Assembly (NCBI GenBank): GCA_965649825.1
Contig: OZ287708.1
Coordinates: 89,101 to 153,100 of the forward strand
Source: Penicillus capitatus
Lineage: Eukaryota > Plantae > Chlorophyta
Reading direction: 5' to 3'
Length of the DNA: 64,000 nt
The notes under the pieces are model-generated. The model searched no databases and had not been told where the DNA came from. It saw only the letters and a program-made list of their open reading frames with translations. Made by a program: the position numbers and the translations under genes. This document shows positions 9,083-64,000 of this stretch, in pieces (position 1 is the stretch's first letter; every line of letters begins with the position of its first letter).

Positions 9083-9289
9083 CCCACGAATCTCGTTGGT
9101 CTGTATTTGTGAGTGGCGGTTGTGGCGGTTGTGCTTTGAACGGCATATGACGACGACCCTCTGTGAAAATTCTTAGTAGATTTTTAGCACATAAAACGGA
9201 ATCTCACAAATCGCGGCAGCAAAGAATCGAATGGTTAAAATACGCAGACGGACTCGCATTGTCTGGTGATGATTCAGCAAATGGTGCAT

Positions 9290-10257: not shown

Positions 10258-11108
10258 GACGAAGTGTTAAGGACAAAAAGCGGATCGCGTGTTGAATAAG
10301 AACTCAGAATGGATTCGCAGTAGGAATCGCGTCATGCAACTTCTTGTCATTGTTGACGATGCCATCACATGCTAAGAATGACGCGGATGGGACACCTGCT
10401 CCAGAATAACGCGTTTGGACAAGACAGCTTCTGCCACGAACGAACTAAGACGAAAACGTCGTTCTTGAGAATGTGTCGCTGGGGGTGTATCTGCAAAGCG
10501 CCTTTCCTTTGAGCTTTTGCTTTTCATCATCTTGTTACTAAATCTAGGTATGTAGTGGGATAAGAGGAAGGGTCCATCTGTGACAATGATGTCACAGCCT
10601 TGCTATTCTTGGGAGTGAAGAGGGAGGGAATGTGATTGGTGGCAGCAGTCGCCGTCCACTCATCTGTTCGCTTTCTTGATACGACGTCGACGTCTATGAC
10701 AAGATGGATGGTGTTGCCAGCTGTGTCCCCACAACTCGCTTTTACATCTTTAAGAAAATTTCGACCCGCGTAATCACTTTACACACTAAAGGGAGCCTCT
10801 CTCCATCGTCGTCTTCTCCGTCAGCGGGCGGTATGTCGATGGCAGGCTTTTCAGAACAGTTTCGAGAAGGGTTGGCAGCAATGGACTAGAAAACAGAAGT
10901 TCGTTTCGATGTTCTATTTACTCATCAAGTTTCGTTAGTCGGGTCAACGAGGCTATCTTGACATTCTTTTCTCTGCTATCGCTCTTTTGAAACGTCGCCT
11001 TTTGAAACCAAACCAATACAATGGCAAAAGTGCTCTGTCACTCCAGTAGTCTATGCGTTCTGATGATCCTTGTTCAACTTGAAGGTTCGTCAGCGCGAGA
11101 CGCGCAAA

Positions 11109-23113: not shown

Positions 23114-25669
23114 TCAGTAGTTGCTGCCATTCTTTCGATGGTGCACTGCTGAGACGTCGCCTTTGTTTAGCACCTCCCCGCCTTCGACCGTTGCGTAGAC
23201 GATCCAATGATCTCCAGCTTCCATGCGTTCCTTTACTGTACATTCCACATAGGATACGGCATTGTGAATGACCACACAGCCTGTCTCTTCGCACACCTGT
23301 CACATCAATCATTCAACACACGACTCTCACGATCCGTCAGGAGGCGACACCTCAGTGACGAGGCCATCAAATCGATTCTGACCAGGATTGAAGGGCTTGA
23401 GCATATGTTTCATGATATCCAGTTCTTTTCCTTCTGCAAGGATATTCACATTGAAACGATTGCCCTCGAGTAAGACGTTCTCGACGGCACGATCGCGTTT
23501 GACAGCGATGGTGAGTCCAGGTGGATTGAAACTTGCTTGCGATACCCAGCTGGCCAACATGCCACTCTCTGCATCGCCGTCTTTGCCACTGATGACACAC
23601 AGAGATCCAACGATGCGACCAACGGCTTGAGAAGCGTCTGAGGCGGTTCGAGAACGCGACACGCCGATGGATTGCTTTTCACGTTTCTTTAGATTCTTCT
23701 CGACTTCTTGAGCCAAATCTGTGCCGCTCTCTTCGCATACTTGGAGATCCTGTAGATATATAGAAAGGGTATATGTGGAGTGTATGGATGGATGTACTTT
23801 GGCGGTCGGCTTCATTTTGACACGGATGGCATCGAAAGCAAATTTGAATCCGGCATCTCTCAGACGTTGCTCCATCTCGTCCACAGCCTCACCACTCCAC
23901 CCAAAGCTTCCAAATACACCACAAGGCAACTGTCTCGCCTGTGTATTACCGACGATTAACCCCAGGACTGTCTGAACCTGCGTCGGCAGGTGACCCCCAA
24001 GTGTCGGGCTCCCTTCACAAAGAGCCGTGTCAACCACGAGGGTGTTAGTGTAAAAAGCATACCGATGATGAATCCATCAATTTCGCCGAGCGCCTTTTCG
24101 ACGTCCGACAGTTCGGATGTCTCCAAATTGAATGTTTGGACTCCTAGTCCACTCTTCTGCATACCGTGGCTGATGGCCTACATCTCTGTATGTTGACGGT
24201 CCATGCTTCTGAACTCTGTCTCACCTGAGCAAGAGCAGCAGTGTTGCCATAGGCACTTGCATAGAACACAGCAATGGTGCCTTTTGTACTGCTCTGCTTC
24301 TTGATCCACTCGGCATAGTTCTCAACGAGTTCGTGTAGTGAATTTCGCACAACGGGGCCGTGCATTGGACAGATACCCGCTATTTCCCGTATCGCTTCTT
24401 CTTTCTCTTCCGTCTCCGATGCAGCAGGGGTCACCCACGACACCAGTCGACCAAACCAGTCCTGGATCGCTGGCAGCATTGAAGCAGATGCCGTTGAGAA
24501 GTTCAGTTGTTCCAGAGCTTTGGCGACCTGTAGAGCTGATGGCGCCAGCATGGTTTCAAAGAAATACTGCCAATCTGTCCCATACGTCTGCCATCCTCCG
24601 ACATCGAAAGCTGTATCCTGAACACATTGCCCCAGATCAAACCTCGTAAAACTCCGAAAGTGACGAAACAGATACCTTCACTTCTGTCAGTTCAGATGCC
24701 ACATGAGCAGAGAAGAGTTCAGACGAGAACAGAATCTTGCGTTGGGGAATGTAGATGGCAAGCATGTCTGGCCATCGAGGTGTGGCAGTCCGAATAAACT
24801 CAAAGTCCATATTCTCAGCAATCTTGATGGAACCACCAATTGGCGCCGCCATCAGTGTGCACTTGTTATAGATATCCGATTCTGTTCCCTCGTTATCTAA
24901 TAGCCAAAACAGAAGACAGTTGTGGGCGTGTGCCGTTCCAGTCATGCAAAAGGAGTTTGTTACCAAATGCGTTGCGCAAGAAACGGATTGCAGCAGCACT
25001 GGCAATGATATCAACTGGATTTGATCCATCTGCGTCGATCAAATGGATCAAAGATCTCAAAACGGGCAATGCATCGGGTTGAAGATGCGTAAGAACGATT
25101 TTGCCAATCCTCTTCGCCGCAATCGTTTTCTGCAGCGTCAAAACTTCACACATGAAGAAAGCACTCAGAAATGAACGCCGTTGTGATATCAGATGTACGA
25201 AAAGGAGATGAAAATGGCTCCGATGGTACATCGATGAGGACAGTCGCCTCTCGAGTGGCTCCCTTCACGAGATAAGCATTCTCAGTCGTGCCGCGTTTTC
25301 TCCCATACTCCACTTCGAATTTGAGACGCTCGAGACAGCTGCTGCGAATCGCCACCAGCTCAGAAGACACTTCGAATACTGATGCATTCCCCATCTGCTG
25401 TACCGCTCCTTTCTCCTGCACCACCCGAGTGCCCTCATGACTCGCCGGCAGTGCCGACGGCGGCTCACTTGTGTCGTTATCGACGACGTAGCTTCGCAGA
25501 CAGGATGGGACAAAATCGATCGCACACGCGAAAACTGTGGCTGAAAAGGAAGGGCGGCACCGTGCCGTGCAGGTGGCGTGTTTCGCGTTCCCGTGCGTTC
25601 GAACATTCCCGTCTTCGCCGTTCTCATTCGTTCTGCCGAAATCTGAGGTGTGATCGACGTTGTCGTCAT
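23114..25669 (-). CDS. FLVA: Chloroplast flavodiiron protein, FlvA/Flv1-type (beta-lactamase-like + flavodoxin + flavin reductase domains)
   Basis: RLKFEVEYGRKRGTTENAYLVKG, YASAYGNT, GVFGSFGWSGEAVD, SWVSQASFNPPG, GDHWIVYA. The diiron motif is non-canonical (THLQPDA for HxExDH; FSSELFSAH). An S/T/R-rich transit-peptide-like exon starts at 25669. Confidence 0.9.
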
Positions 25670-44442: not shown

Positions 44443-46574
44443 GTCAGTGTCATTATCGCTTTTCTAAAAGAGATAGTATGGGAAAACAGAACTGCAACTG
44501 TACGATCATCAAACGACATTTGATATCAAGCCTTCTTCGCTAAAGAATACAGAAAACGAAACGACGACGCGATCCAGGTAGAAACGCGTTAGCGGTACAA
44601 ACACTGTTGTCTGCTTTGCTTTTAGATCCATTAGAGGCCGAAAGACGCAAGAAAACGCGACCGTGCCCCCGCGAAACTGCGATACCGGAGAGTTGATTTT
44701 TCTGTTTACATTTTTCACACACGGTGGCTTCTGTCTTCCAAACCAGACTGTTTTGCTCCTTGTTTAACGAAAAAGTGTCCTGCAATGCTGTCCGGCTTCC
44801 GAAGTGTTCCGCTAAATCCGCAGATTGTATTCAAATAAAAAGCATCGCTATAGATCGTTGTGCCGAGTGGCATGGAAAGGAGAACGTCGAAAGTGAACGA
44901 CGATCTTGAAGCCCCAATCACCGCTCACATTGACGCTCAGCGATACTCTAAATGCGAAAGACGACCGTTCGCGGGTTCTCGTTCGTGACCAGCAAGCCGC
45001 ATTTATCGTCTGCGAATGTAGAATGCATGCGACCTTCTCGATCCCCTTCCCATAGCAAAACCGAAAGAGATCTAAGGATGAAGAAGATTGCGAAGATATT
45101 AATGTTCTTCGATTGGGGCCTAACTCGTCACAATTAAATCCACTAGACACAACTAAGCAAGATGAAGAAAACATTCAGGTGACAAATAGTAGCTCAATTC
45201 CAAAACCCATTGGATGTGCCGCGGGAGTGGTGATGAAGAAACATTGGCTTTCGATCCTTAAGGGCAGTATGACATTTGAGAATAGAATTCCAACGTCTTG
45301 ATTTTCTGGATGATTTACCGCTAGGAGGGAAAACGAGTTGTGATAGCTAACTGATTTCTAAAAGGTTCCTCCGAAGCATTGACTGAACTTGTTTTCACTG
45401 AATCGAACTTTAGTACTCGGCGATTAAAGTCCATTGGCTCTGAGTCGAAGAAAGTAAGCGGGTGATTTTGCCAGAAAACGTAGAAACAAGTACCACACAG
45501 AAGCTATGCACCATTTCAGAGGATTCGGACGCTTGGTGATTGGTACCTAATGGCACTCTGTATGATTCTTATGCTCAACGAGTAAAGCACATTGGCATTT
45601 GTTTAGCGAAATTCACTAAAAGGGTGTATGTTTACCTCTTTGAGGGGTTTTGGGGATGGACGAATATGTTTCGAGTTATAAGCTTGTTTGCATGCCAGTA
45701 AGGCGTCATGTAGCTATCTAGGTATCTAAACAGACCTGAATTTTTTACGCCTGCAATTGTAAGTATTAACGTTGCAAACGAACGTCATTCGTACCCATGT
45801 AACAATGGTTCTTGCCTTCCTTTGCTGCACACAATCTGAAGGAAATTGACAGCGAGCATCTAAAGTAATTTGCTTCATAAACTCTGTCTCCAGATGTGTA
45901 CGATTATACTCGATCGCGACTTTCTCGCTAGAAGTTTGTTCTCGTGATTTCAGGATTACCAACCTTGAATCCTGCGTCTTCTTCTCAACGCTATTCTGCC
46001 TCGTTCCGTGTAGTGGATGGAGGACCCAAAAAAGAAGATGGTCTTTCTGAATGCTTGAATTCACCGACGGAATGCAGATTTCGAGATCGCTGTTCTGCTT
46101 TCAATTCCACAGGACGCAGAACATATTCGACAGAATCCGTTGTCCAACGTATACACAGGTTCCACTTGACCGTATACAACCTGATAAACCGTATAGCGTG
46201 TCGAACGTTGCCTGTTTCGCTTTTCCAAAGACTGAAGCTCAAATACCGCAACTTCAAATTTTCCTGCTGGTAAATCTTCAGACCGTTATCGGCCCGTACA
46301 CTCAAAACACGCTTCGTCGTATTCGTGTTATCGCCCTGTTCAATACGCGAATGTGTCGAGAGACTTGATGCACGACAATTTTAACGTAGATCTGATGTTG
46401 GTGACGCGCTTGCTCCGTACTGTTTCCGCACCAGACGCATTCTTTGTTCCATTTCGAATGCGTGTCATTTCTTTCGCTTTCGTTTAAGGTTCTCGGGTAT
46501 TCGTTATTCGTGTACGTGGCAAGACGCACTGTTCCCGACAACCATCGCTTTCGGTCAAGTCAAATTTGTTCTGT

Positions 46575-49500
46575 ATGAAGTGGACATTGTTGATTATATT
46601 GCTGTCCGCTGGTTCGTCCTGCCAAACAGTGGACACAACCAAGTTCTTTGGAAAATGGAACGATAAACTGCGCGATATCGCGGATGAAATCACGGCGCGT
46701 TTATCTGCAACCGAAAGCAGAAATTGCGAGTGCAGTTACTACGCTTGTGGAGAAAGGCCAGATAAAAACATAACGGAATGTCTCAAATCAGACCACAAAG
46801 AAAAACTGGTCTGCGGCGTCGATCCCTGTGGACATATGAATGTCTGCTATTCTTCAATGTGTGGGCGAATGCCAACTGTTTGCTTTGTAGCTCAGCATAA
46901 ATCGAACATTCGTTCGCATACCACCTTCTGCGACACCGGGCAGTTACGGCAACGCAATCAAGAGAGACATCTGCTTAACTCAGGTGCCTACATGCAGCGC
47001 TTTCACTTTGCACGACCTTTTTCAGGGTTTGGAAGACGCATTCAAAAATGCCAGAGATTACACGAGTGGGTTTGTTCCGTGGACTTACTTTGGGGCAGCA
47101 GAGGCAGGAATATTCGTGTACTGTGCATTTTGATGCAAATATGACATCAGAAAGTAGGACTGGTTTTAGGGGCTGGCCAGGAAAGCCGCGAGAGCAGGTG
47201 AAACTTGGAATATGTCGAGACTACGATCCAGTAACAATGATTTCTAGTGTTCACATCTCTCTAGACGAGTCTGTGTCTAGAGAGTTCGCCCTTGGTGGAG
47301 GCGAGCAGCCTGGCATCCGAGGAATATTGTGATTCTCGTCGATCTCACGACATCCATGAAGGACAAGATCCGAGGAACCGAGAAGTGGAACATGACTCTA
47401 AACATCGTTACACGCTTCTTGGAGACTCTGTCGGAGGACGACGCAGTTCAGATTGTGGGTCTGAAGAGTGAACCCAAAGTGCTGATGGGTCCGGACAGGA
47501 CGATGCCCGCCACGGAGCAGACTGTCGAGAGGTTGACAAACCGGTTGAGAAGGTGGGAACCCGATGAAGGCGACTCTGTTGTGGATATCGGCAAAGCGAT
47601 CGATCGAGCCATGGATCTGCTGCATGCCAACAAGGACCGAGGAATCACAAAATGCGAGAACGTATCCCACTGCCTTCTCTCTTTCTCGAGATGACTGTTG
47701 CTGTCTAGCACATTCTGCTGTTTTCACACAGAAGGGACTGCAGCCATTCCATCAAACGAGACTGCGCGTCCAAGATGTTTGTGAACGAGGATGGAGAATC
47801 CGTCTCTCGACCGGTCGAATCGACAATCGGCGTCGTGGAAGATATCATAGACAGGCAGAACAAGGATTCGCTCAGAAAGAAGCCAATACTCTTCTCCTAT
47901 ACCCTGTCCCCAAAGGCAAACGGCATGCTGAGCCAGTTAGCTTGCCGGCTGGATGGAATCCACGTCGATCTAGAGCGTGAGCTCGAAAAAGGTGGCATCC
48001 GGATTCACGTCAGAATACTCTTGCCATGAGTTGTATCTTCAGGTATCCTGGACCCTCTCCATCTGATGCGTGGGTACTTTCGAAGAGCAGCGTTGACGGT
48101 GGCCAATGCCACTGGAGGAAAGATTTCCGTAAGTAACATGTACAACGATGACTCTGGGTTAGGAAGAATGAACACGCTCACGATGCCGGTCTTCTATAAG
48201 TCGCATTTTGACTGCCCGCCAATTCATTATGGGGTCATCGGAGCCGACATGCGACAATCCGACTATCGAGCCAACGGAATTGTAGCAGATTCACTTAACT
48301 TCGAGAATGATGTATCTAACTGGAATGAACATGTCACAGAGTGCAAATCCATACGAGTCACTCGTTGTCATATGCAAGTCCTGAGGGAGAAGGAAGGGCA
48401 ATGCGTCTATCCTCTGGAAAAATCAGGAGACGAAAAATGCTTCGAGTTTAAGAAGCACATCTACTACGTCGAAGAAAAAAGAGCGATGAAGTTGGAAGAA
48501 GCCAAAGAGTACTGCCTGAGTCTAAGTGGGCAGATGATCGCACCGCGGGATGTTGAGGAGAGGCGTTTTCTGGCTACCTTGATGCCGCCGGACGGCGCGT
48601 GGATCAACATCACTCACGATGACGAGATCGACTGGAAGTGGCCAGACGGCGAACGACTTGATCCAGAAGAGAGGAAGAGCATCGAGCGCTCCTGCGATTA
48701 TCCCCTCCCTCCCGGATTCTACATGGACCCTCGAGACTACGATAACAACTTTCAGTGTGTACAACAGCTTGAACGAAAGACAGTCGTCTGTCAGTTCGAC
48801 GCAGGACAGATCCCGAAAGTTTGCCGATCCAACGTCGTGCTCTGCATTCTGGTATTTCGATGACGGTTTGTTTTGCTCCAGATTGTGGTGTCTGTCACAG
48901 AAGATGACTTCGTGGACACGATACGTACCTGTGATGCGGAGGACTGTCTTCTGACGAACATACCGTCTGATGGCTACACGTCGCTGCAAGAAACTGACAT
49001 ATTCTGCAACTGGAATATGTTAGTAGATAACGATTTCTCCAAAATTGGCTGTTGTTCGCCGGAAGACCTGATCAGGGAGTGTGACGCGGTGGTAACACGC
49101 ATCATTGTTGTAGTCTTTCGCAGTTGATGTGAGTGGTTGTAGGAAGTGAACGACATGGGATTCAACGTAACAAATGAGATCAAAAATGATTCCAGCAGTG
49201 GGAATACCACGGTTGTAGTTGCAGTAATTATTGTGGCCATCGTGGTGGTGATCTTAGCCACACTGTGCTTCTGCTGCGCCCGTCGACAAAGGTCCTCTTT
49301 TGACAAGCCGAGTCATAAGCCAATCCGTTTAGCCTCTGCGGATTACTTAAATCGCCGCCTTGATGTAATGATCGGAAATCGTTCCGGAAGACCTGGGTCT
49401 ATTCAAAGTACATGCAACATTTGCTTGCAACAGAATCTCAGTTTATGTGCAGGTCCATTTGCGGTTGCCTCGCCGAAAGCTGCTGGATCAATCGGAAAGA

Positions 49501-50517
49501 GACCGGAATTGGTGGTCAACATCGAGGTCAATATTCTCGACAATGGATGGGAGAAGATCGGAGGCTACGGCCGCGTCCGACAAGGGGAGTATACGGACAC
49601 CACAGGGAATGTGCACAAGGTGGCCGTCAAGTTCGTGGACGCATTGGCACCTAACGCCGCGTGGGAGGCCCTCAAGAACGAGTTTGACATCCTGGCTTCC
49701 ATTCCTCTCCATCCGAACATCGTCAAGCCCATCGGCGCCCACTGGGGGGACCGCACGCAGAACTCCCAGCGCTACATCGTCGAAGAGCTGATGCACACCA
49801 ATCTTGGAGATCTGATGATCGACACGAGTACTCCGTCTTATCCCGGCAAGACCATGGTGTACAAGGACTGGATCAATATCTTCGTCGGCATCGCTCGTGG
49901 TCTGGAGCATCTCCACCAGCATAAGATCATCCACTTCGACTTGAAACCTAGAAACGTCCTCCTAGACGAGGACATGAACGCCAAGATTGCAGACTTCGGT
50001 TGCTCCAAGTCGAAGTTTGATACCTACATCGAACTCAGCAAGATGGGCGGAACTCCTCCGTACCTGGCACCGGAGTGCTGGATGCTCTACTACGCGCAGA
50101 ATGTCAGAACGGAGGTGGCGAGAGTCAAGATCGACGTCTACAGCTTTGGCGTGATCATGTGGGAGTGTTTAAACGGAGGGAACAGTTTGGCGACTGCGTT
50201 GTACAAACGCAAAAGCACGGCATCTCCTCAGGCCTCTGCCAATCCGGACAACATCGAAATTGTCCGCGAGAGCCGTTCGTCTGGTAAGCAGCCAAGTGAT
50301 AGACCTACCAGTGTTCTTCATCTTCTCTTCTGATGTAGAAGGAAACCAGCAGTGGGAGATCCAGTACTATCTCAGCGAAGAGATCCCTGAAGGCTTGAGG
50401 AACTTGGTCACACAGTGTGTCCGTGTCGATTTTGATTTCCGACCGACATGCGGGCAGATTCTGGACACCCTGGTGCCTATGCTTGACGAAGAGTGGGCAA
50501 ATCATCCAGTTCCTTAG
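46575..50517 (+). CDS. Receptor-like kinase: signal peptide - alpha2delta-like dCache/vWA - C-type lectin domain - TM - non-RD TKL kinase
   Basis: Signal [19 protein letters not shown]|RVRPWW...[12 protein letters not shown]...[32 protein letters not shown]...GVIGADM. CTLD: [12 protein letters not shown]...[14 protein letters not shown]...[29 protein letters not shown]. Kinase: [35 protein letters not shown]. Confidence 0.9.
47275..49010 (+). repeat. Left arm of a ~1.7-kb inverted duplication (partner 54884-56626)
   Basis: Long runs identical to the reverse complement of 54884-56626, including introns. By eye about 90% identity or higher. Confidence 0.95.
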
Positions 50518-53500
50518 AATCTTCTTGATTTGGTTATCTTCGTGCATTGAGATCGCTGCTTTATTTCTTAGACAGGTTGCCTTCTCCTCTTGTACAGAAT
50601 GCACTGAAGTGTGGAAAGTGGTTTCTTGCAGACGAAGCGGTAGATATGTTATGCTCGAAAATAAACACGACAAAGCCCATTTGCGTCTTCTTTAGAGAGT
50701 TGTTTGTTTTCAAGATCCATTGAGTTTTTTTACATCATGTCTCGCTTATTGTACTGCAGGATATACCCAGAAGTGAAACACCTTTCGCCCGATTTAAGGC
50801 ATTAGCATTTTCAATCTTCTCTCCATTATGTGCAGAGAAGAGTAGTCAATGTAACCATTCCATTCAGTCCCCTCTGTATCGATGACCTTTCCGGGATTGC
50901 ATGAACTGTCGACTGTACAGACTAGCACAATCATTTATTTGAACGTTGAAAGTATCACTGATAATGAAACTCAGTGAAAGGATTTCAATCGATTAGACAA
51001 ATAAACGATTTTTGTGCTAATCATTATGATTCCTGTTTGCGCAATGAACGAGAACAGTTTGTGTCAGATCACTGGAAAATGCGCCAAATTGCAGATCGCT
51101 ACATTGTTAGGCTATTTGTGTTAAACGCTTATCAGTAGCACCATTGTATACTCGGTTGAGACGCTTCTTTTTTGCGCGCTGGGCGTGAGAGATGTAAAGA
51201 AAAATAAGTGAAGGACGTAAATGACGCAAAAGATGGGTTCAGATCCGAATGGACGGCGTTGTTGTTCAGGATTTTTTTGGTTTGGACTCACGTCTCCTGT
51301 CTGGGAACGACGCCCGTGGCAATGACGAGAAACATGCCAGCTGTTTTGCTCAGAAGTGGATCTCAGATTTTACACATGCTGTTTTGTGCGATTTAAATGC
51401 ACTCCACGCGTTCACGAAGCGTCGAGTTCCGCTGCGGCCTGAGTGAGCATTTTGGTAATCGGGTTAGGTAAGGCACCAACACAACTCAGCGTCGAAGGCG
51501 ACGCGATCAATAGCAGAAGAACATCTTCAACTCGGATGCAACTCAAAGACACGAGATAGTTACAAGAAGAATACCGTCCTTCAATATTCAGAATGGTTCA
51601 GGAATCGTGACTTTAAACACTTAGAGTCAAGAAACTTCACGAATTCATACGCGACTGCCCAATAGTTATAAGGGACTTGGGAGAAAGCTATCCATCAGCC
51701 GCTTTCAATGGTTTAGAGGAGCCTTAACTGTTAAAAATCCGTAACAATCGCTATATTTCGCAGTTGCGTCAGGTATACTAACCTCCTACAACACCTATCT
51801 GCCAGTTTTGATGGTTCACTTCATGTCTCGCAGAGGTAGACTTCGAAGAAGTAGAAATGCATTATCTGGTCTGCGAACTGGATGACGAATCAGACTGATA
51901 TGGTTGTCACTAGGACGTTCTAAAACATTCAGACGGAGGAGATCTAGCAAGTTTGATGGTACATAACCGTATTGCTATATGAACATTCGCTGTTTCGTTT
52001 CTTGTTGTTTCCGAGAAGCATGATAATAATAATAATAAAGTTGGTGCTTCTTACATCCCCTTTTCAAGTTAAACATCAGAGGAGCGAGAAGCATGATGAT
52101 TGAATCACAATCTGAGGGTCACGTAGCCGCGTGGTAGACGACAATGGACACATTTAGTTCTTAAAATCCTTTCTCTAAGCGGTCTGTAATGTGTCACGCG
52201 TTGTCTTCTAACTTCGATTTAGCAAGGGTAGTTTTTCCTATACAAGCGTTTTAAAGCGAGAAGAAACTGGATTTTAACAAAAGGAACAGAAAAACGTTAA
52301 AAAGGACGGGAAAAGACTCACTCTTGGTACCTTAAGAGTAGGGCTTTTTGCGAAGCTAGAACCATGGACGAAATGCAGCAGAAAATGTGGGTCACAATTC
52401 GTAAATCGGTTTCCATTACGCGCTCTCACCATTAAGGTCGATGGTTCTTTTCGCTTGTATCAGGAAGAATACAACAGAATCAATTGTAAAGCAATACAAA
52501 TTGCATTCATCTGTTTTGTGTCACCCATTTTTATGTGTAACGGCACAGAAAAGATAAGAGGTGTGTCGGACTAGAAAGGCGGTTGGTTATAAAGCTGCCA
52601 AAGCAGAGGACGATGAAAAAGCTGACGAAGTTTAGAATCGGGCGTGTTGTACGACGTGGATGAGCAATGATCTCTTAATCACCGAATATAATTTATGCCG
52701 ACGTGTGCGTCTCGGAGAGGGCTGGCACGGATCTATGCTTTGCCTTTCACGTGTCTCGAAAGCGAGCTATATGTTGGCTTTTATTACGGGTTCTAATTTT
52801 GATGTTTGATATGACTACTGCAGCAAAAAGAACGGACAACATAGAGACAGGAAACGTAAAGTTTAGAGCATGTTTTCGATTTTAGGAGGCGTCCTGGTTG
52901 CACGCTATGGTCATCGATCTCCGTCACCGAACTTTGTCGACGACTACCCGTGTAACTCTAGAGCGTTTTTAACGACCTCGACCTTTAATTCAAATTGTCA
53001 AGTCCTACTCGATCGGCTAACGTCGCACCCAAGAAGAATTCATTGAGCCTGAAAGCTTCATTGTTCGCGAACAAGCGTTTCTTTAACGCAGATTGTAAGA
53101 AAGAAATCGCATCGGAGAAGCACCGTTATTTGGCCTTGACATCCGTTGGCGAAATTCTCCGTTGCATACAATTAAGAGACCGCACTGCACTGTGTGTTTG
53201 TGACGAATCGTTTTAACGTTTTCGTTGTTACACCGTTTCGTAGCGTAGACTCGTTATCGACCACTTCATGAGTTCATCGTTTATTTTCAACTAAGCGTTG
53301 AATTTAGTAAGAGGTGAAGGCAAGATGTGTTTTCCAAAGTGTAAAGGTGTGGTCACCTATGGTCATTTAGATTTGATTCTATTACTTTTCACAATTCGAC
53401 GATGGTGTAGAGATGTATTGATATTTGATGACTGATTGCTAACTAGGTATCGAGGTTTCCGGCGAACTTACAACAATTGCTATTTCTCGATTAAGAAAGT

Positions 53501-54790
53501 ACTGTGCAGTACTTGAGAATGAAGATTCGAAAAAACTCGGCTACTTCAACGCGTTGCAAACGCCTCAGTTAAACGCGACGTTAAAACAGCGACAATAGGA
53601 ACAGGCAAGAAATAGTGTGATTGATATTGTGTTACCATACAAAAACGTAAACCGCGAGTCAAAAAGGGAGTACCTCTGTCCAAAGCGGTAAAGACGAATC
53701 TCGATTCATATGATTGACATCTGCAATTAACATCTGCCTGCGTTCATAGCTCAATTCAGAACTTAGTGTACACACAAACCTATCCTCAAAACGTTTATCC
53801 GAGTCGCAAAAAAACAATCTGCCGTTCACTCGAGGACCCATCTTCGAAAGTAGTTTGAATAGCTACAGCCAACTGCATTACTCATTGGGGAACCAGTTTC
53901 TAAAACGCTAGCGTGAAACCCTAGCCATTGATGAAAGGTAAGCCCATCACTAAGCGCCAAGACGCTTGTCATGTTTATCTTCCGAAGATTCTCGTCAAGA
54001 CTCTCGATCTTTGGCGTTCTCTACTCTTTTGCAAACCAAAACGTTAAGAAGAACTTAAAAGCTTCGGGGATGATCATAGAGCATATCAAACCGCGACTCT
54101 ATGTAAATCATCATGGTGGGGTGCAGAATAAGAACGGCCGTGAGACAAAGCATTAGATAATTCGACCGAAGAAATCGGGTCGGGATCAAAGTAGCCGGAT
54201 GCAGTGAGGCGCCATTGTTGACGGACAAAGGAAGTAAAGCGAACGGCGTCAGGTAAAACAGGAGGCAGAGGTGGGAAACGATAAGGTGCGACGGAGGTGA
54301 AGACGATGGCGAGTTCGGTCGGCAATGGATTCAGATGCATCGGATGAATGGCCCGACGTTCGAGGAGAATTGAGCATCGATTGCCCAGCCAGTCGCATAA
54401 CCGTGGACTACGTCCAGAAAAAAACACTTCAAGAGGCAACCAAAGCATCCCGGAGCATGTTTTCGACCATGAAAACCAATTCGACAGTCACATCATTTTT
54501 GTGTAGAAGAATGTCCGCTGTGGCATCTTTTCTATACTGTAACTCTTGTTGATTGTTTTAAGCGTCGACGATAGCGCCGAGGTGATTAAAACCAGCTCTC
54601 ATTAAACACCATGTTTAGCGTTTATCGTTGGTTCTTTTCGCGATAGAGTGAGAACGGGTGATCTTTTCGTCGGTCAAATCACTTGCACTGGCAAAACATG
54701 GCATACGTGCATTGTTCACACATTTACGTCAGTATGATTCGTGAGGTGAAACGAAGGTTCAAAACACAGTTTGTATCGCACGGTGTTGAT

Positions 54791-57312
54791 TCACTTTTCA
54801 CTTGCTTGCACAGAACACTCGCTGAGTGGTATTTTGGAGCAACAGGCGAGTTCATTATAGTCATAGTCGAAAATGTGTCTCTTGTTGCAGAATATCTTAG
54901 TTTCTGGCAGCGACGTGAAGCCATCAGACGGTATGTTCGTCAGAAGACAGTCCTCCGCATCACAGGTACGTATCGTGTCCACGAAGTCATCTTCTGTAAC
55001 GGACACCACTCTCTGGAGCAAAACAAACCGTCATCGCCATACCAACCAGAGTGCAGAGCACGACGTTGGATCGGCAAACTTTTGGCCTCTGTCCTGCGTC
55101 GAACCGACAGACAACTGCCTTTCTTTGAAGCTGTTGTACACACTGAAAGTTGTTATCGTAGTCTCGAGGGTCCATGTAGAATCCGGGAGGGAGGGGATAA
55201 TCGCAGGAGCGCTCGATGCTCCTCCTCTCTTCTGGATCAAGTCGTTCGCCGTCTGGCCACTTCCAGTCGATCTCGCCATCGTGAGTGATGTTGATCCACG
55301 CGCCGTCCGGCGGCATCAAGGTAGCCAGAAAACGCCTCTCCTCAACATCCCGCGGTGCGATCATCTGCCCACTTAGACTTAGGCAGTACTCTTCGGCTTC
55401 TTCCAACTTCATCGCTCTTTTATCTTCGACGTAGTAGATGTGCTTCTTAAACTCGAAGCATTTTTCGTTTCCTGATTTTTCCAGAGGATAGACGCATTGC
55501 CCTTCCTTCTCCCTCAGGACTTGCATATGACAACGAGTGACTCGTATGGATTTGCACTCTGTGACATGTTCATTCCAGTTAGATACATCATTCTCGAAGT
55601 TAAGTGAATCTGCTACAATTCCGTTGGCTCGATAGTCGGATTGTCGCATATCGGCTCCGATGACCCCATAATGAATTGGCGGGCAGTCAAAATGCGACTT
55701 ATAGAAGACTGGCATCGTGAGCGTGTTCATTTCACTCAATCCGGAGTCGTCGTCATACATGTCACTTACAGAAATCTTTCCTCCCCCAGTTGCCTCGGCA
55801 ACCGCCAACGCTGCTCTTCGAAAGTACCCACGCATCAGATGGAGAGGGTCCAGGATACCTGAAGATACAACTCATGGCAAGAGTATTCTGACGTGAGTCT
55901 GGATGCCACCTTTTCCGAGCTCACGCTCCAGATCGACGTGGATTCCATCCAGCCGGCAAGCTAACTGGCTCAGCATGCCGTTTGCCTTTGGGGACAGGGT
56001 ATAGGAGAAGAGTATTGGCTTCTTTCTGAGCGAATCCTTGTTCCGCCTCTTTATGATATCTTCCACGACGCCGATTGTCGCTTCGACCGGTCGAGAGACA
56101 GATTCTCCATCCTCGTTCACAAACATCTTGGACGCGCAGTCTCGTTTGATGGAATGGCTGCAGTCCCTTCTGTGTGAAAACAGCAGAATGTGCTAGACAG
56201 CAACAGTCATCTCGAGAAAGAGAGAAGGCAGTGGGATACGTTCTCGCATTTTGTGTTTCGCGGGTCCTTGTTGGCATGCAGCAGATCCATGGCTCGATCG
56301 ATCGCTTTGCCGATATCCACAACAGAGTCTTCCTCATCGGGTTCCCACCTGCTCAACCGGTTTGTCAACCACTTGACTGTCCGCTCCGTGGCGGGCATTG
56401 TCTGGTTCTGACGCATCAGCACTTCGGGTTCACTCTTTAAACCCACAATCTGAACTGCGTCGTCCTTCGACAGTGTCTGTAAGAAGCGCGTAACGATGTT
56501 CAGAGTCATGTTCCACTTCTCAGTTCCTCGGATCTTGTCCTTCATGGATGTCGTGAGATCGACGAGAATCACAATATTCCTCGGATGCCAGGCTGCTCGT
56601 CTCCACCAAGGGCGAACTCTCTAGACGTGTATCTCTTTGACAGTGAATTTTGGACAGCGTAAATACCGGATCATATTCGCGACACTCTCCTGGTCTTTGT
56701 TGCTCTCGAGGCTTTCCTGGCCACATTCTGCAAGCACGTGTTTGTGTTTTAGTACACATGATGCATATTACATTAAGACTCCAGTCTCGGATGCACCGAA
56801 ATAGGTCCAAGGAACAAATCCACTTGTGTAATTCCGTGCTTCCATAAATGATTCTTCCAGTCCCTGTGAAACGATCTAGTAAACGAAGACCCTGATCAAA
56901 CAAACCTGTGTCAGACAAACGTCTCTCTTGATCTCGTCGACATAGCTCCCTGCTGCAGTAAAGGGCGGAGTGAGGACATATGCACGTTGCGTGCTGAGCT
57001 GCTCATCGTTTCTTCATTAATTTACGAATGAAAGCAATCGATACAGACTTGCATGTGACCGCAGTGCGGAACGCCACAGTCGAGTTTTCCGACGTGGCCT
57101 GACTTGAGGCATTCCGTTAGAGAATTCGGCGGTCGCTCTCCGCAAGCATGGTAGCTGCATTCACAAGTTCTCTTCTGGGTCGTATTGAGTCGCGACGTAA
57201 GTTCGTTCGCCAAGCTCTTCATCCGGTTACTCCAGTCTTCAAAAAACTCTTCCGTATCTGTTCTTGCGCGACACGCGCTGAAAAGAACCAGTAGAAAGAA
57301 AAAAAATCGCAT
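54791..57312 (-). CDS. Kinase-less, TM-less paralog of the receptor ectodomain (signal peptide - dCache/vWA - CTLD); secreted protein or truncated copy
   Basis: Signal MRFFFFLLVLFSACRA. Same exon structure and motifs (YDP|RVRPWW, DLTTSM, MYDDDSG, GADM, CTLD). The frame ends ...CCSKIPLSECSVQASEK* and no TM or kinase sequence is visible downstream. Confidence 0.8.
54884..56626 (-). repeat. Right arm of the ~1.7-kb inverted duplication (partner 47275-49010)
   Basis: Reverse complement matches 47275-49010 from GTCTAG|AGAGTTCGCC to ATTCTGCAAC. Confidence 0.95.
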
Positions 57313-57585
57313 CGCTGGAGACGCTGCGATTCTATGATCGTTGTTCGGCGATGCGTTGCTTAGTGTCAAGTACGCGAGATGAGGTGAATTTTAGACGTTT
57401 GCACAAAGAGAAAGGCAACTTGTGCGCGAGTTCGAAATGAAGGACGTGTGGTCAACAAACCCTTATGTCACCCAGCCGTTTCGTCCTCGGTTCCCAAAGC
57501 CTATCGCCCAGTCACTGTACATGCGACTACTAGCTTACTCAACATGACTCGGCAGGGTTATCGGACGCAGGCGAGCAGAGCGTCT

Positions 57586-59570
57586 TTACGCGTTTTCAGC
57601 GGACCAGTACTTAATGAGATGATCCGACCCCGACGTCAAAATTGCCGTGTTATCGGCTTTGCAGAGAATCGAAAGGGCACCGCCATTGTGCGCGACGAAT
57701 TCATGGAACATGTTGCCTGATAGAGGATCGCAACAGCGGACAAATCCGTCATCGTACGCCACTGAGAGCACCTAGATTCGGCGTCCAGTAAAAAATCCTG
57801 CATGTGTATTCGTTACCTTACCTTGTCGCTTTTGTCAAAGATGCATTGATTTGCAGGGCATCGGGAGAGCGTCATGGTTATGATCTCACGCATCGTCCGC
57901 ACATCCCAAACTCTGATATCTCCGTCCGTATCACACGATGCAATGAGGTGACCATCGTTTGCAAAGCAGCAGTGGTTGCAGGAGTTCGTATGTCCACAGA
58001 ACGTCGCAAGGCTTCTTCCCAAGCGAGCGTCCCATAGAGCCACTGTGCGATCGGAAGAGGCTGTGCAAAGCACGGAACACTTTGGCTTCCACGCCACTTG
58101 ATTCACAGAATCCAAGTGTCCCCTGCGTCGTGCCGATATACAAGGCCGAGACAATCCTTACGAACCTGAGGACAGATGTGCATTTCTCCGAGGGGAGATC
58201 CCAAAGACGTGTGATGTGATCAAGCGACGCCGTTGCCATCATTTGCCCAGTCTCGTGAAATTTAACTGCCCAAATAGCGTGATTTTCGATGAACGTTTTG
58301 ACGCATTTCTTCTCTTCGAAGTCCCACAGTTTCACGGTGCCGTCTCCAGATCCCGTGGCAAGGCCATTTCCTGAGACGAACGGTTATCCTTTGCTGCTTT
58401 AACATCGGCGAGACCTCGTGGATGAAAATCGATGCCAGAAATCCAGTCGGTGTGGCCTTCTCCAGTCATTATCAATTCGCCGTCGACGAACTGCCATAGC
58501 TTCCACGTTCGATCGTCGCTCGCCGAGGCCACAAGTGGTTTTGTTGGATGCAATGCAAGATTGCTCACAGAAAGCGTGTGTCCCTGCATTTCACAGCGGC
58601 CCCTCTACATCTCGAGAGAGAAAAACAGCAAACACACTTTGAGAATCGTGCTTGTGGTAAAATCTTGTACTTGGATTCTTTTCCACTGCACAGCGTCACT
58701 TTCTCGTGCCCGAGGTCGCCCCACCGTCGACTCTGTTTGTCGTTTTTCCCCTCGAGAAATGACGACCGTGTCATCCTTTTGCGAATCCTTTTCTGCCACA
58801 AGCGTCTCAACAGCTTCCAACTGAAAACGCAGTGAGCACAGTTATCAGCAGTGGTCCCCGCCAAACAAACCTTCTGTTGAATTTTCTCTTTCTCCAAACA
58901 AATAATGGCCCTTTCCTTCAGTTGCTGTTCGCACTTTCTCTGCAGATCACGTATTCGCGGTTCGTAAGCGTTGCATTGTTTCTTCAGTCGCTTGATCTCC
59001 TCAGTCAGAGTGTGCTTTTCCTGTGCGACGCGCTTGTAGTGCAGCCGGTGCGCATCGCGTTCTTTCTGAAGTCTGAGAGCGTTGCTCTTTGCAGAATCGG
59101 CACGCAGATTCGCTGCGCGCAATTCCTCCTGCAGACGATCGATCTCCTCCTCTAAAGACTACACTCGCGTCATGGTGTTGTGACTTCCTAGACCTCGTCG
59201 AACGAGATTCAGCCGGTATTGGTCGGGAACGTTCCGGCGTTCCTCCGGCAGGCCGTTTCTATCGCTGAGATCCATCCACTCTGCCTCAAACGCATTGAGT
59301 GTCGCGAACATTCCATGTCGAACGCAGAAGTTTCGGATGAAGTCGTCCACGAGCTCGATGCCCCGACCGACATCTTCGACCTCCATGTTTGCGTTTTCTA
59401 CTGCCTCCAAGGAGACGTCGAGATTCTGGTCTCTATCGACGCGATCGAATCGATGGCGACGATGAGCGAAAGTCTTACTGCGATGTCGCTTCGCTGCTCT
59501 CAGGATCTGTGCGATCATCAGCATCCAACATCGCCGCCTCGTCCAGACAGACGGCATCCGTCTGGTCCAT
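57586..59570 (-). CDS. PF20: Flagellar central-pair WD40 protein PF20/SPAG16, multi-exon
   Basis: VDDFIRNFCVRHGMFATLNAFEAEW...NVPDQY, coiled coil LQKERDAHRLHYKRVAQEK, then WD40 repeats (GHTLSVS...WKLW, GHTDWIS, GHLDSVN, GHTNSCN). Confidence 0.93.
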
Positions 59571-59720
59571 ACCCTGCGCTGGCGTCTCGTTTGACGCTAA
59601 CGAAGGCGCATCTATCAAATCGTCTCATTACCATGTCCTGTCGTCTGCGTATGTGGAGCGACCACAGAGCACTCCCACAAATACACCACCAACTCAGAAA
59701 GAAATAGAATCTGTCTCCAG

Positions 59721-60558
59721 TCATCGTGCATGCATCTCGTTGATGAGGGTCTGCAACACGTCTTCGATGCGCTCTCTATGCAGGGACGGATCAAGAAGCC
59801 ATGCACGCAACAAGACCTAGTGCCATCCATGAGATCCATTCCGTTATGGTAACCACACTTCGAGAGTATCGCTTTGTTGAGAAATTTCCGTTTTCGCGGG
59901 TTCCCTTATCTGTTCCAACAGTGCATTGTGAATCTTCATTTTCGTCTCTGTCTCTTTCTTGTACATCTCGCACACCTCCTTGATCCAGTCATCTGCGAAA
60001 AAACATCGTAGAACTGGGACATTCAACAACGGTGATAAAACGTATGAGTTTAAGATCAAGCTTCTCGAAGACAACATGATGCCAATAGTTATCCGTTGTA
60101 TTTTCCGAACCTGCCTGCAAAACACGCAACGCGGTCCTGCATCGAAAACCATATTGGCAGCCTGATGATGCATTTTATGGATCTCACTGGATCATCTCTG
60201 CTGCACGTTGCAGTTTCTCAATCTCAACGTCCAAATCTCGCAAATTGTATCGAATCGTCTCTCTATATTTCTTTTGACAAGCCGCTGGCAGATCTGGAAT
60301 CGTTGCAAGAATACCGAGATCGAGATCGGGAAACATTCTGCCATTCAGTCGATTTCAGAATGCCATAGATAACTGCCATGCTGCAAGAAAGCTCACAAAG
60401 ACGACAAATATGTATTTGTGGCATCACTGGCGCAATCAAACCATGCAGCATGTGCTTCCTACAATCATTGCGTCATGGACTGTCCAACGCCGAAGGAGCA
60501 GGACAACCTCCCATTTCAGTTTCCCTTCTCTGAAGGCATTAATCGCTTCGCGTACCAT
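59721..60558 (-). CDS. Small helical protein resembling the C1orf109/CINP (AFG2/SPATA5 cofactor) families
   Basis: Spliced segments MVREAINAFREGKLKWE-EAHAAWFDC, LGILATIPDLPAACQKKY, WIKEVCEMYKKETETKMKI, LLRAWLLDPSLHRERIEDVL. The resemblance is judged from memory only. Confidence 0.4.
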
Positions 60559-60762
60559 TCTCTACATCGATCCTTTCTCTAGTGGCTCGCATCTCCTCTG
60601 TATACAGGGATGACCTGTGTCTTTCTCTGCCACTGTCTGAACTCCGTTACCGACATGTGGACGAATGGGATATCATGGACCAAATGAGATTATGTGAGTC
60701 GTGCTGTTCTTTGATGTCGTATAGATTCTTCCATTTGTACTTTGTCTTCTCGTGTCGATATC

Positions 60763-62425
60763 ATGAACGAGGAAGTGGCCGATCTGTGCATGGCGGACAC
60801 CGATTCGTCATCGAATAGTCCGTGCACTCCGCCAGCGGACGATGTCGACAGTCCGTTTATGCAACATCACGAGAGCAAGTACTTCAACGACCCGGTCCAC
60901 GGAGGGTTTCACCTTGGAGCTGCCGCTTGTGCTTTTGTGGATACCAAGCCATTCCAGAGATTGCGTCATTTGAAGCAACTCGGCTTTTCTTACTATGTCT
61001 ACCCCGGTGCCTCACATAATCGATTTGAGCACTGCTTGGGTGTTGGACATCTTGCTGGAAAATGGGCCAGATCACTCATGCAGTGTCATCGATTACCTCA
61101 CGAGGAAATGGATCGCTGTGCCACTCTTGTAGAAATTGCCGGTCTGTGTCACGATCTGGGACATGGACCTTTCTCGCATGCTTGGGAACAGTCCATTCTC
61201 CCGAGCCTTGGCGTTCGCAACTGGTCTGCATTCGTTTTTCCTTATGATTTGTCCACCGGATGATTGTCAGGTGCCACGAGAAAATGAGTTCGACGCTGGT
61301 GGAGTACATCTTTGACCGACACGACATTGAAGATCGTTTCGATCTGAATCGCCACGATATGGACACGATACAGAATCTCATCGCTGGAGAGAAGCCCACA
61401 CATGCGGAATACTACAGCGGACTGCCCGTTTATCTGTTTGATATTGTGAATAACCGTTGCAGTGGCATCGATGTGGATAAGATGGACTACCTGCAAAGGG
61501 ATGCGCTTCACAGCCACGTCACCGTTTCTGCACCCTACGGCCGATTCCTCGACTTTGCAAAGGTAGCTGCCTGACAGGCCCTTCATCAGGGACCGATGCA
61601 GCCGTGGTCCGATCGTAGACGGATGATCGAAGTATCCTCTTCCGGATGCGTGAGCTCGGCAATTTTGTTGAGATGTTCAAAGATCGAATGAAAATGCATC
61701 GCGTCGTTTACAAGCACAAGTCCGATCTTTTGTGGCGATGGTGTAGTCTATGACATTGCTTTTAGGATAACTGTTGCCATTGGATTGATGGTGGCCGATG
61801 CTTTGCATCACGTGGGACATGAACTGCAGCTGCCGGCTCGAAGTCACAATCCCGATGCGTTCCTCAAACTCAAAGATTCGTTGCTGGAATACGTCTACGA
61901 ACACTATCAGTCGAACTCGCCCGGAGCTCAAAGAGCAAAGGAGCTATGCAGAAGGATTGAGTCGAGACAACTGTACACACTCTGTGGAGAAATGGCCATT
62001 CCCGAGAACCACATTCCTTGGTTCCTGACAAACAAAGTGACTGCCAGTGATATCACCACTCGACAGAAAACCGATGGCCAGGTGAGACCCTGATAGACGA
62101 CAGAGATGTCTGCCATGCCTAACAGGTCGATCTGAGGCCAGAAGACATTCACATATCCTACAACTATGCAGACTGTGGAATGAAGGACAAGAATCCGATT
62201 CGCAGAGTCAAGTGCTATCAAGAGCGTTTCGAGGAGATCGGCATCATGGCAGAAGAAATCGAACCCATTCAACGACTATCCATCCGAGTCTACTGCAAGA
62301 ACAGGGAACATGAGGGCGCTGTGAGAGCTGCTTTCGGGTCATTCAAGAAATCATTTGCGCCCGAGCTGTCCACTCCTGACCGCAATGAGAGGAGGTCCTT
62401 GGACGCGCAGTACTTGTCTGAATGA
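60763..62425 (+). CDS. HD-domain dNTP triphosphohydrolase, SAMHD1/VENOSA4-like, multi-exon
   Basis: FNDPVHG, FQRLRHLKQLG, YPGASHNRFEHCLGV, HDLGHGPFSH, IDVDKMDYLQRD, RRIESRQLY. No SAM domain. Confidence 0.92.
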
Positions 62426-64000
62426 AATTGGCGGCGCTTCGCTGACGTGCATGCAAGTAGACGTCGTGACAGTCATGACCAATTTCGTTTTCCATTCGTT
62501 TTCCTTTCTGCTGCTTGCCGTCCGCGACCGGCAGCGTGCATTGATTCTTGACTCTTGTGATGGAGGGCTGGGTCAAAAACATATCATTGGACCTATTATG
62601 AAGTGGGGATGTGTCGAGGGAAAATGATATAGTGTTCCACGAAATCAAGCCAGGTGGACGCATATGTTCTCTGAACCCCTTGACGGACTGCAGCGTTAAA
62701 TATGCGTTCATCTTTCGCTTCTCTTTCACAAGTGTTCGTGTCGGGTCTCGATTTCATTTCATAGAGTCCACAAGATCTCGGGAATTTGCATATTCTTCGA
62801 TCCTTGGCTGATGCAGTTAGGCACTCCTTCGCTGAATGGGATACTGGTTGAGGATTCGGGACCTTTTGGCTTTGGGATTCGCGAATTGTAAAAGCGAATG
62901 CCTAAGAAATGTGGATCTCTCCAGTCGGAAGCGCGCCAAAACCCACACCGTCCAGAGCTATGTTCTCTGTCCTACCGACCGCTGAGCTATCTCAATGCCG
63001 TCAGCAGTGACGACAACAAACACGACATCGATCCATTGACATTTCAATCTCGAAGCAAAGCATACGGGATGCACGATCTTGCAAAAAGAGACAGGCGCGA
63101 TCCGACTGAGGAAAACCGTTCCCCGTTATCTATTGTGCCTACTGCTCTCGGATCGTTCAAGGTGGAAAGCTGCATACATCTTGTGTCGTGAAGAGGGATC
63201 ATTGGAAAGGGCAATCGCGTCTGTCGTTTGTTTTGCCGTCAGAGATATCCTTGAAAGAGCCTTTTCGTTGTACGTGTCGACATTTTTAAACAAATGACGG
63301 CGAGAAATTGAGCGGATCATTCGCCACGATGCATAACGATCTGTGATGCTCACCGCACTGAGTCATCATGCCATCTATCCCCTCTGACTCCATAGCTGAG
63401 ATGTGTGCCGGTTTCGCTTACCAGTTTTCATCTTGCTTCTCCATGCAGCAGCCATTACTGCTCCCTTGATATGCTTTGTGCTGTCTGTCAGATCGCCGAG
63501 AGTTGCTGACGCCGAGATTCGTATCTAGACTGAAATTGAAAACTGCATTCGGTTGTCGCGTGCATCGAGTTCCTATGCATCGATGTCTGGATGTGCGAGC
63601 GATCCTTCAGTTGGCACAGTCTATGACAGCCAGCTCCTGCATGCTCTAAGACTGCGAAGTTGTTCTTGATGTTGTGTATTGTGAAGTACAATTGACATAC
63701 CGTGTGCATTCTGACGCTGTGTTCCTGATTGTTTGTATAGAATCCGACACGCACATATTGAACGTTGACGTCACACATAATTATACCATACACACTTTGT
63801 AAACGTCGACAACACTTTAATCAGAACTGAACTCGATCACAGTGGTGGTGTGACGCTCTCTCACTCGCGAGCACACGTCGTCATCTCTGTACGGCAAGAT
63901 AGGTTGGCGGCGCCGCCATGCTGCATTCTATTCTGCGCAGGCAATCTCCATCTGAGATAAACGCGCTGACAGCTGAAGTTCCTGAAAAATCGTCCAGTGC

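Follow-up and report, generated by a model that had tools for sequence, protein, structure and literature searches.

Does a gene that resembles a receptor but lacks its kinase, and that lies inverted beside the complete receptor, encode a product of its own? This question is raised by a 64,000-nt stretch of contig OZ287708.1, called the window throughout; all coordinates are positions in the window unless another contig is named. Two related genes lie convergently in it, 4.27 kb apart from stop to stop: gene A, which encodes a full receptor kinase, and gene B, which an earlier note had described as an inverted kinase-less twin that might act as a secreted decoy or ligand-binding partner. Their counterparts in a second species (species 2) are referred to as A' and B'. 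The analyses below indicate that B appears to be maintained and functional, and that it encodes a paralogue of A reduced to a soluble ectodomain. It may in addition modulate A from outside the cell, a proposal for and against which we consider the balance to be even.

Gene B is predicted to encode an ectodomain without kinase or anchor

The span first assigned to the twin (54791-57312) coincides exactly with the ends of B, the ATG being at 57312-57310 and the TGA at 54793-54791. In the manual gene model (Table 1), the exons are joined by introns of 42-52 nt with GT..AG borders, the intron phases match those of A, and there are zero frame breaks. The donor of intron 7 was placed at AAC/GTCGTG (the slash marks the splice point), which sets the intron length at 48 nt for A and 52 nt for B. 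A 30/34-nt version of this intron was rejected, as its short donor is missing from species 2 and the six residues that it would retain are missing from P0001, the closest full-length relative; with the AAC/GTCGTG donor in place of the shorter intron, B is 729 aa long. The B model was also found intact in strain contig L003 (730 aa, same tail) and in contig L004 of species 2. Because L003 is 98% identical to window positions 52085-64000, it was taken to represent the same or a sister strain. Intact B is thus present in three versions (window, L003, and L004), which supports the view of a maintained gene, and the open frames and conserved splice sites noticed earlier hold across all eight exons.

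The N-terminus of B, read by eye from the sequence, is signal-peptide-like, with one basic residue, an 11-residue hydrophobic core, and small residues after it; this character is kept in B', which begins with MRVFFFLLVLARASRE. Toward the C-terminus, the alignment of A and B runs to the exon 8/9 boundary of A (A residue 726). The GT of the exon 8 donor of A is missing from B, which reads through to its TGA. As a result the stop of B lies five to seven residues past the last conserved stalk cysteine and about 20 residues short of the position of the transmembrane helix (TM) in A. The stalk pattern C...CC...C, which is found family-wide, is retained in B, and the ectodomains of A and B contain 29 cysteines each. 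B also carries N-glycosylation sequons (NxT/S). Its C-terminus is hydrophilic, ending in ...PLSECSVQASEK, and neither a TM helix nor a glycosylphosphatidylinositol (GPI) signal was recognised in it; the tail ...NELACCSKIPLSECSVQASEK is specific to B. Because B combines a signal-peptide-like N-terminus with the lack of a hydrophobic C-terminus, this gene is best read as encoding an ectodomain alone, which is probably secreted. Secretion is further suggested by the even number of mature cysteines, the sequons, and a disulfide framework like that of A. Two details of the earlier note are accordingly retained, namely that the protein ends just ahead of the TM position and that its diverged end keeps the CC pair.

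The ectodomain resembles the amino-acid sensor of alpha2delta proteins

Residues 88-303 of B directly match alpha2delta-1 of voltage-gated calcium channels (8.7e-11), and a profile built from 17 family members matches alpha2delta-1 residues 85-499 with an E value of 1.8e-56. The matched stretch of alpha2delta-1 is its first dCache_1 module with a VWA domain inserted. A universal amino-acid-binding motif of dCache_1 was defined by Gumerov et al. 2022 (PMC8915833); it consists of Y-x4-R-x-W ahead of the VWA domain, followed by a Y and a D past it. The pocket residues mentioned in the earlier note turned out to be this motif, and all five are present in B, with the VWA domain located between the two motif halves. 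In A, the counterparts of the first half are Y169, R174, and W176. Among the 17 aligned family members, R173, W175, and D461 are invariant, and Y426 is found in at least 90%. By reading of the alignment, the metal ion-dependent adhesion site (MIDAS) of the VWA domain is degenerate in this subfamily, reading DLTTS and having FSHRRD instead of TDG.

Pfam detected both VWA_2 and Lectin_C in A and in B, and Pkinase in A only. The C-type lectin-like domain (CTLD) of B also matched CTLD structures in the PDB; on reading the sequence, none of the sugar-binding tripeptides EPN, QPD, and WND was found in B residues 525-645 or in the same region of A. A and B therefore share one architecture, in which a single dCache_1 with the amino-acid motif and an inserted VWA is followed by a CTLD and then by a cysteine-rich stalk. 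Signal peptide, pocket residues, VWA, and CTLD, which the first reading of the locus had described as retained, are all accounted for in B. A and B probably share one class of small, amino-acid-like ligand, which B would bind through the conserved motif.

Gene A (Table 1) supplies the reference for this comparison. Its intron set is backed by the species 2 orthologue A' and by the transcript P0001. A model that reads through 49408-49452 was rejected, given that A' and P0001 both support an additional in-frame intron there; with this 45-nt intron removed, A is 1150 aa long, and since the intron is in frame, the reading frame survives either splicing or retention. The closest solved structures to the kinase are those of the plant receptor-like kinases (RLKs) SOBIR1 (3.8e-20) and FERONIA. 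A is itself unusual, in that it joins a dCache_1 amino-acid sensor of alpha2delta-like type, into which a VWA is inserted, and a CTLD to a TM and an RLK-type kinase.

Exons 5-8 of A and B are kept alike by gene conversion

The two genes are linked by inverted arms (47275-49010 and 56626-54884) that are 94-96% complementary over 1.74 kb, far beyond chance. Together with the presence of Pkinase in the plus-strand copy only, this confirms the inverted kinase-less twin as such. Similarity between the copies is, however, strongly partitioned. Nucleotide identity between A and B is 64-70% in exons 1-4 and 56-68% in introns 1-4, which are essentially unalignable, versus 92-97.5% in exons 5-7 and 93-100% in introns 5-7. 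At both ends of the tract, identity jumps from 55-73% to 83-100%, and the tract opens 6 nt ahead of exon 5. At the protein level, the parts encoded by exons 1-4 and the C-terminal tails are 55% identical. Outside the tract, the proportion of synonymous differences (pS) is 0.75, which is saturated, and that of nonsynonymous differences (pN) is 0.27, compared with a synonymous divergence (dS) of 0.10 inside. Saturated sites outside the tract and near-identity within it point to an old duplication overlaid by a young, bounded tract of interlocus gene conversion. This tract contains 72% of the coding sequence of B; exons 5-8 encode most of the pocket, VWA, and lectin domain, and the first 171 residues and the tail of B remain copy-specific.

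Comparison of the two strains showed conversion in progress. Within the tract, nearly every site that distinguishes L003 B from window B is one at which either of the two matches A. L003 has the A-like state at 22 of the 28 sites that differ in exon 5. Between 55720 and 55620, right after the pocket loop, 11 of 12 sites that differ from L003 B are instead A-like in window B. Near the pocket, window B reads as A, whereas L003 B keeps NTFTMPVFYQPYEKCP, which is close to B' of species 2. The A-to-B conversion at 55620-55720 is therefore recent and still polymorphic, and conversion is ongoing. Relative to the genes, the tract has the same limits in species 2 (L004 9367-11106 and 19438-17700) as it has in the window. 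We also considered an island of divergence maintained by selection at the pocket; it was set aside as a weak lead, there being only one type-specific site (G433S) in its favour, with the adjacent part of B converted to the A type in the window and not in L003. With regard to the earlier reading of the twins, the idea of a maintained ectodomain gene stands; what it missed is that their similarity is upheld by ongoing conversion of exons 5-8 only.

The A/B pair is shared with a second species and both copies are under constraint

Cross-species evidence came from two species. Contig L005 was rejected as a third one: it belongs to the same assembly as L004, is 99% identical to it, and adds no independent data. 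L004 repeats the gene order of the window, with a TPR gene, then A' and its kinase (8669-12614), B' in inverted orientation (20145-17613), and a WD40 gene, and its genes are 75-88% identical to those of the window at the nucleotide level. The modelled A' and B' proteins have 1152 aa and 731 aa, respectively, with GT..AG introns at the same positions and in the same phases as in the window. B' is without TM or kinase and ends in ...ELACCSNTALIKCSVQDK followed by a stop that is at most 2 codons from the stop position of B. In exons 1-4, there are 27 type-specific sites (A equal to A', B equal to B', A different from B) versus 0 species-specific sites (A equal to B, A' equal to B', A different from A'); in the tract, there are 3 type-specific versus 77 species-specific sites. 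These site patterns indicate that B and B' are orthologues, and that within either species the core undergoes concerted evolution. The A/B pair is thus old and predates the split of the two species.

The ratio of nonsynonymous to synonymous divergence (dN/dS) was calculated with our own Nei-Gojobori script. Between B and B', it was 0.27 in exons 1-4 (dS 0.43, 170 codons) and 0.28 in the tract; between A and A', it was 0.34 in exons 1-4 and 0.26 in the tract. One-sided binomial comparison of B and B' with neutrality gave p values of about 2e-6 (exons 1-4), 1e-18 (tract), and 1.5e-4 (26-codon tail). In the tail, B and B' have 58% amino-acid identity, versus 44% for the stalk end of A and A'. Moreover, in relative-rate comparisons with P0001 as outgroup, A had 9 and B had 6 unique changes in exons 1-4, and A had 10 and B had 7 in the tract. 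Both copies are therefore under similar purifying selection, with B evolving no faster than A. Frame breaks, lost splice sites, and neutral dN/dS, by which a pseudogene would be known, were all absent from B. The earlier suggestion of selection rather than decay is thereby substantiated both outside and inside the tract, and the stop and tail are conserved as well.

That B might be a dead partial duplicate, made to look intact through repair by conversion from A, is accordingly very improbable and contradicted by the data: although 72% of its coding sequence lies where such repair could act, the parts outside the tract, namely exons 1-4 with their 171 codons and the tail, keep their frame and splice sites, B-specific residues are conserved at a dN/dS of 0.27 and a rate no faster than that of A, three independent B sequences are intact, and constraint in parts untouched by conversion excludes a decaying copy rescued by it.

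Alternative functions of B

The proposal that B acts on A can be stated as follows. B would be secreted and would bind the same amino-acid-like ligand class as A. It would then tune A signalling extracellularly, as a competitor for ligand, as a presenter of it, or as a partner of the A ectodomain that contributes no kinase. Exons 5-8 are repeatedly homogenised between the two genes by conversion across the inverted repeat. An architecture without anchor or without kinase recurs in the family (P0020, P0013, and a paralogue termed D), which favours reading B as a gene for a soluble ectodomain.

Several observations weigh against this proposal, or limit it. Functional coupling of A and B is putative, and linkage and conversion both follow mechanically from an inverted duplication. 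Secretion of B is read from the sequence. Kinase-less relatives are common and are usually unlinked to kinases. In B', the first tyrosine of the motif is replaced by F, and differences between A and B cluster by the pocket (GLGR in A versus GLSE in B), with G433S common to B and B'; because of these differences near the pocket, B may bind not exactly the ligand of A. AlphaFold2 modelling of the A ectodomain from a 2-row alignment gave a predicted local distance difference test (pLDDT) score of 33. Spliced B transcripts were sought in metagenome and protein searches and none was found, both metagenome scans returning the P0001 contig only; a word-indexed search with the last 150 residues of B likewise gave no match, although this type of search is weak for negatives. 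The phenylalanine in B', the pocket-side differences, and the conserved copy-specific N-terminus would together counsel caution against regarding B as a pure decoy.

The alternative that survives best is that B, secreted or matrix-bound, serves as a functional binding protein of the alpha2delta-like kind whose work does not depend on A, adjacency and conversion being by-products of an old inverted duplication. We regard this as possible, though less probable than a role in modulating A. It is a serious rival because kinase-less members form the majority of the family and because a second, unlinked soluble copy exists. A kinase is present in only 2 of the 17 aligned members, the others having a TM, a hydrophobic tail, or a soluble form, and the unlinked soluble paralogue D occurs in the same sample. 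B also starts 274 nt after the WD40 gene, with a short upstream region of its own that is unlike that of A, and 27 B-specific residues are conserved across species within its N-terminal 171 aa. Against this stands the conversion that has long been tolerated over the whole binding core in two species, which would be tolerated more readily where A and B require equal binding properties; the argument is one of plausibility.

The upstream region deserves a remark of its own. The interval between the stop of the WD40 gene and the ATG of B, which lie on the same strand, is 274 nt (57313-57586); in species 2 it is 279 nt, and its sequence is kept. With such a gap, the promoter and 5' untranslated region (UTR) of B would have to be very compact, or transcription would be shared with the WD40 gene.

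A further alternative is that B is a full receptor whose transcript splices from exon 8 to unrecognised TM and kinase exons. The single feature in its favour is a GTGAAT that overlaps the stop of B and whose sequence is conserved in species 2; there, however, it could not extend the frame, because the species 2 stop lies upstream of the GT. When A was compared with the window by tblastn at E values up to 10, zero matches (kinase or TM) were found in 50518-54790. The cross-species alignment covers 46421-51177 and 54516-58148, with the genes and UTRs being 77-80% identical, and no block conserved with species 2 was found in 51177-54516. A scan of this AT-rich spacer for hydrophobic open reading frames (ORFs) yielded chance-like stretches only. 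In the approximately 300 nt past the stop of B, by comparison, conservation is patchy and ends near 54500, indels of 1 and 4 nt occur, and every frame contains stops; this segment is probably a 3'UTR. With the tail conserved up to the stop as well, we strongly infer that no TM or kinase exon lies downstream of B, and splicing to such exons is very improbable. At the genomic level, the claim that the protein does not continue into a TM or kinase was upheld.

The feature coordinates on which these analyses rest are collected in Table 1.

Table 1. Positions of genes, domains, and tract limits in the 64,000-nt window
Feature	Position	Strand	Remarks
Gene A, full receptor kinase	46575..50517	+	11 exons, 1150 aa
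A exons 1-6	46575-46841, 46891-46983, 47026-47117, 47170-47230, 47281-47661, 47709-47991	+	
A exons 7-11	48043-48833, 48882-49091, 49143-49407, 49453-50283, 50339-50517	+	
A TM	49206-49277	+	Residues 748-771
A kinase	about 49494-50514	+	Pfam Pkinase 1.4e-35; APE present
Gene B	57312-54791	-	8 exons, 729 aa, without kinase and TM; manual model, GT..AG throughout, frame open
B exons 1-4	57312-57049, 56998-56906, 56863-56772, 56727-56667	-	Manual model
B exons 5-8	56620-56240, 56192-55910, 55858-55065, 55012-54791	-	Manual model
Signal-peptide-like N-terminus of B, MRFFFFLLVLFSACRA	57265..57312	-	Read by eye from the sequence
N-terminal motif half in B, YDPRVRPWW (Y168, R173, W175)	56603..56675	-	Across intron 4; aligns to YDVRRRPWY of alpha2delta-1
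VWA domain of B	56160..56578	-	Pfam VWA_2, residues 186-303, 32.8 bits vs cutoff 27
C-terminal motif half in B (Y426 in SDMYDDD; D461 in GVIGADM)	55647..55766	-	Aligns to NVYLDA and GVMGVDV of alpha2delta-1
C-type lectin-like domain of B	55098..55460	-	Pfam Lectin_C, residues 540-637, 32.3 bits vs cutoff 22.6; PDB CTLD matches
B exon 8: Cys-rich stalk, followed by the tail ...FCNKRHIFDYDYNELACCSKIPLSECSVQASEK (B-specific) and TGA	54791..55012	-	Aligned to A exon 8 up to the donor
Probable 3'UTR of B	54490..54790	-	Patchy conservation with species 2
Conversion tract, A side	47275..49010	+	Exon 5 through the first 129 nt of exon 8
Conversion tract, B side	54884..56626	-	Inverted repeat, identity step, strain mosaics
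Spacer between convergent genes	51177..54516	.	Low G+C (42-45%), no kinase/TM homology

Distribution of the family and other features of the locus

An exhaustive profile search returned 1144 relatives at E <= 0.001. The named relatives, from Ostreobium quekettii, Bryopsis sp. KO-2023, and Neomeris dumetosa, are all from Ulvophyceae. The window is eukaryotic in character, with short GT..AG introns and a G+C content of about 49%, and the published values are 45.9% for Bryopsis and 52.4% for Ostreobium. The host thus appears to be a siphonous-type (ulvophycean) green alga. P0001 is a contig of 3.8 kb (JGI sample 3300008031) whose product is an entire receptor kinase; as it contains no introns, it is probably a transcript. 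Among the 17 aligned members, Lectin_C was found in 16 and VWA_2 in 15, along with the two kinases mentioned above; members without a kinase end in a TM and short tail, in a hydrophobic C-terminus, or soon past the stalk (P0020 and P0013). Negatives from the word-indexed protein search are weak: with a full-length query it gave one homologue and missed ORF fragments of 94% identity that were later found with an exon 7 query.

Paralogue D (L007:2900-5480; ENA ERZ25074695 ctg313904) comes from the same sample and has about 41-48% identity with A and B. This unlinked soluble ectodomain gene, TM-less and kinase-less, ends in ...CCSTEELTSRCGGHKGEREL and a stop just past the stalk; a convergent Pyr_redox_2 gene starts about 190 nt beyond this stop. 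Another paralogue, C (L006:7200-10250 and L008:7200-10200), is present in both species, has a kinase, and is without an inverted twin; on the species 2 contig it is about 50 kb from the A/B locus. A Bryopsis genome preprint (10.1101/2023.11.22.568388) reports that no C-type lectin was found in Bryopsis, in contrast with P0009 (GMH32949.1, from Bryopsis sp. KO-2023), in which Pfam detected Lectin_C with 47 bits against a cutoff of 22.6.

Elsewhere in the window, an ORF at 23327-24037 on the minus strand combines flavodoxin and flavin reductase, being of the flavodiiron type of phototrophs, which fits a green-algal source. At 14057-22453 on the plus strand there is a run of long ORFs for a tryptophan- and arginine-rich repeat protein with motifs like F..W....; one of these, 15650-17149, gave no Pfam match.

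Relation to known receptor systems

The SRK/SLG pair of the Brassica S locus consists of a receptor kinase and a linked, secreted ectodomain paralogue. The present pair is alike in that A carries a kinase and the linked B has a signal-peptide-like N-terminus and a full ectodomain without TM or kinase. In both systems, conversion keeps the ectodomains similar (within a haplotype in the case of SRK/SLG), so that concerted evolution accompanies linkage, and the soluble copy is retained although it is dispensable for kinase chemistry. The systems differ in their ectodomains, which are of the S-domain/B-lectin type there and dCache_1-VWA-CTLD here, and in their hosts, a land plant and an ulvophycean alga. 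Moreover, conversion at the present locus is confined to exons 5-8, leaving the N-terminus copy-specific, and there is no sign here of a polymorphic recognition locus. Of the two comparisons drawn in the earlier note, that with SRK/SLG therefore holds for the linked soluble ectodomain and its concerted evolution, whereas that with receptor-like proteins (RLPs) does not, because B is without an anchor.

Animal soluble decoy receptors (such as osteoprotegerin, DcR3, and sFlt-1) are products of separate genes or isoforms, and have demonstrated ligands and effects. B resembles them in being the ectodomain-only product of a receptor family, and could titrate a ligand or block pairing; the families are unrelated, however, and the function of B is deduced from its sequence.

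With alpha2delta (PMC8915833), B shares the sensor architecture and motif, and, like alpha2delta, it is kinase-less and probably extracellular. Features of alpha2delta that B lacks are a second dCache_1, a delta peptide with GPI anchor, and a perfect MIDAS (DxSxS...T...D); in B, the single dCache_1 is followed by the CTLD and cysteine stalk, and the profile match stops at residue 499. B is thus not an alpha2delta protein proper, and no calcium-channel link is implied. Ser/Thr kinases that combine dCache_1AA with VWA are known from some Streptophyta (PMC8915833). A has this same combination, but belongs to Chlorophyta (Ulvophyceae), bears an added CTLD and stalk, and has a conserved soluble twin, a partner that PMC8915833 does not describe. 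In our literature search, no description was found of a CTLD-bearing ulvophycean form or of a soluble twin.

Significance of the A/B locus

Green-algal receptor kinases are barely characterised, and VWA-bearing dCache_1 amino-acid sensors are known chiefly in animals, as alpha2delta/CACHD1, and in bacterial chemoreceptors. In its fullest form, the preferred reading of B as a soluble partner of A would describe a two-component system for extracellular sensing of an amino acid, or an amino-acid-like metabolite. An alpha2delta-type receptor kinase would work with a secreted twin, whose core is matched to the receptor by conversion and whose own N-terminus and tail would serve in buffering or delivering ligand or in capping the receptor; SRK/SLG-like logic would then have evolved independently on the animal alpha2delta sensor fold. 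We offer this complete scheme tentatively, and consider it rather unlikely to hold in every part.

The locus nevertheless presents a clean, conserved natural pair, in which one sensor is placed on a kinase and the other is probably secreted. A division of labour between them may be visible in the DNA itself, the shared core being homogenised by conversion and the private ends being under selection, and the conversion tract is of textbook quality, bounded by limits that are identical in two species. The pair opens two questions for this family of algal receptors, namely which ligands eukaryotic single-dCache_1 sensors bind, and what effect ectodomain-only paralogues may have on the receptors that they resemble.

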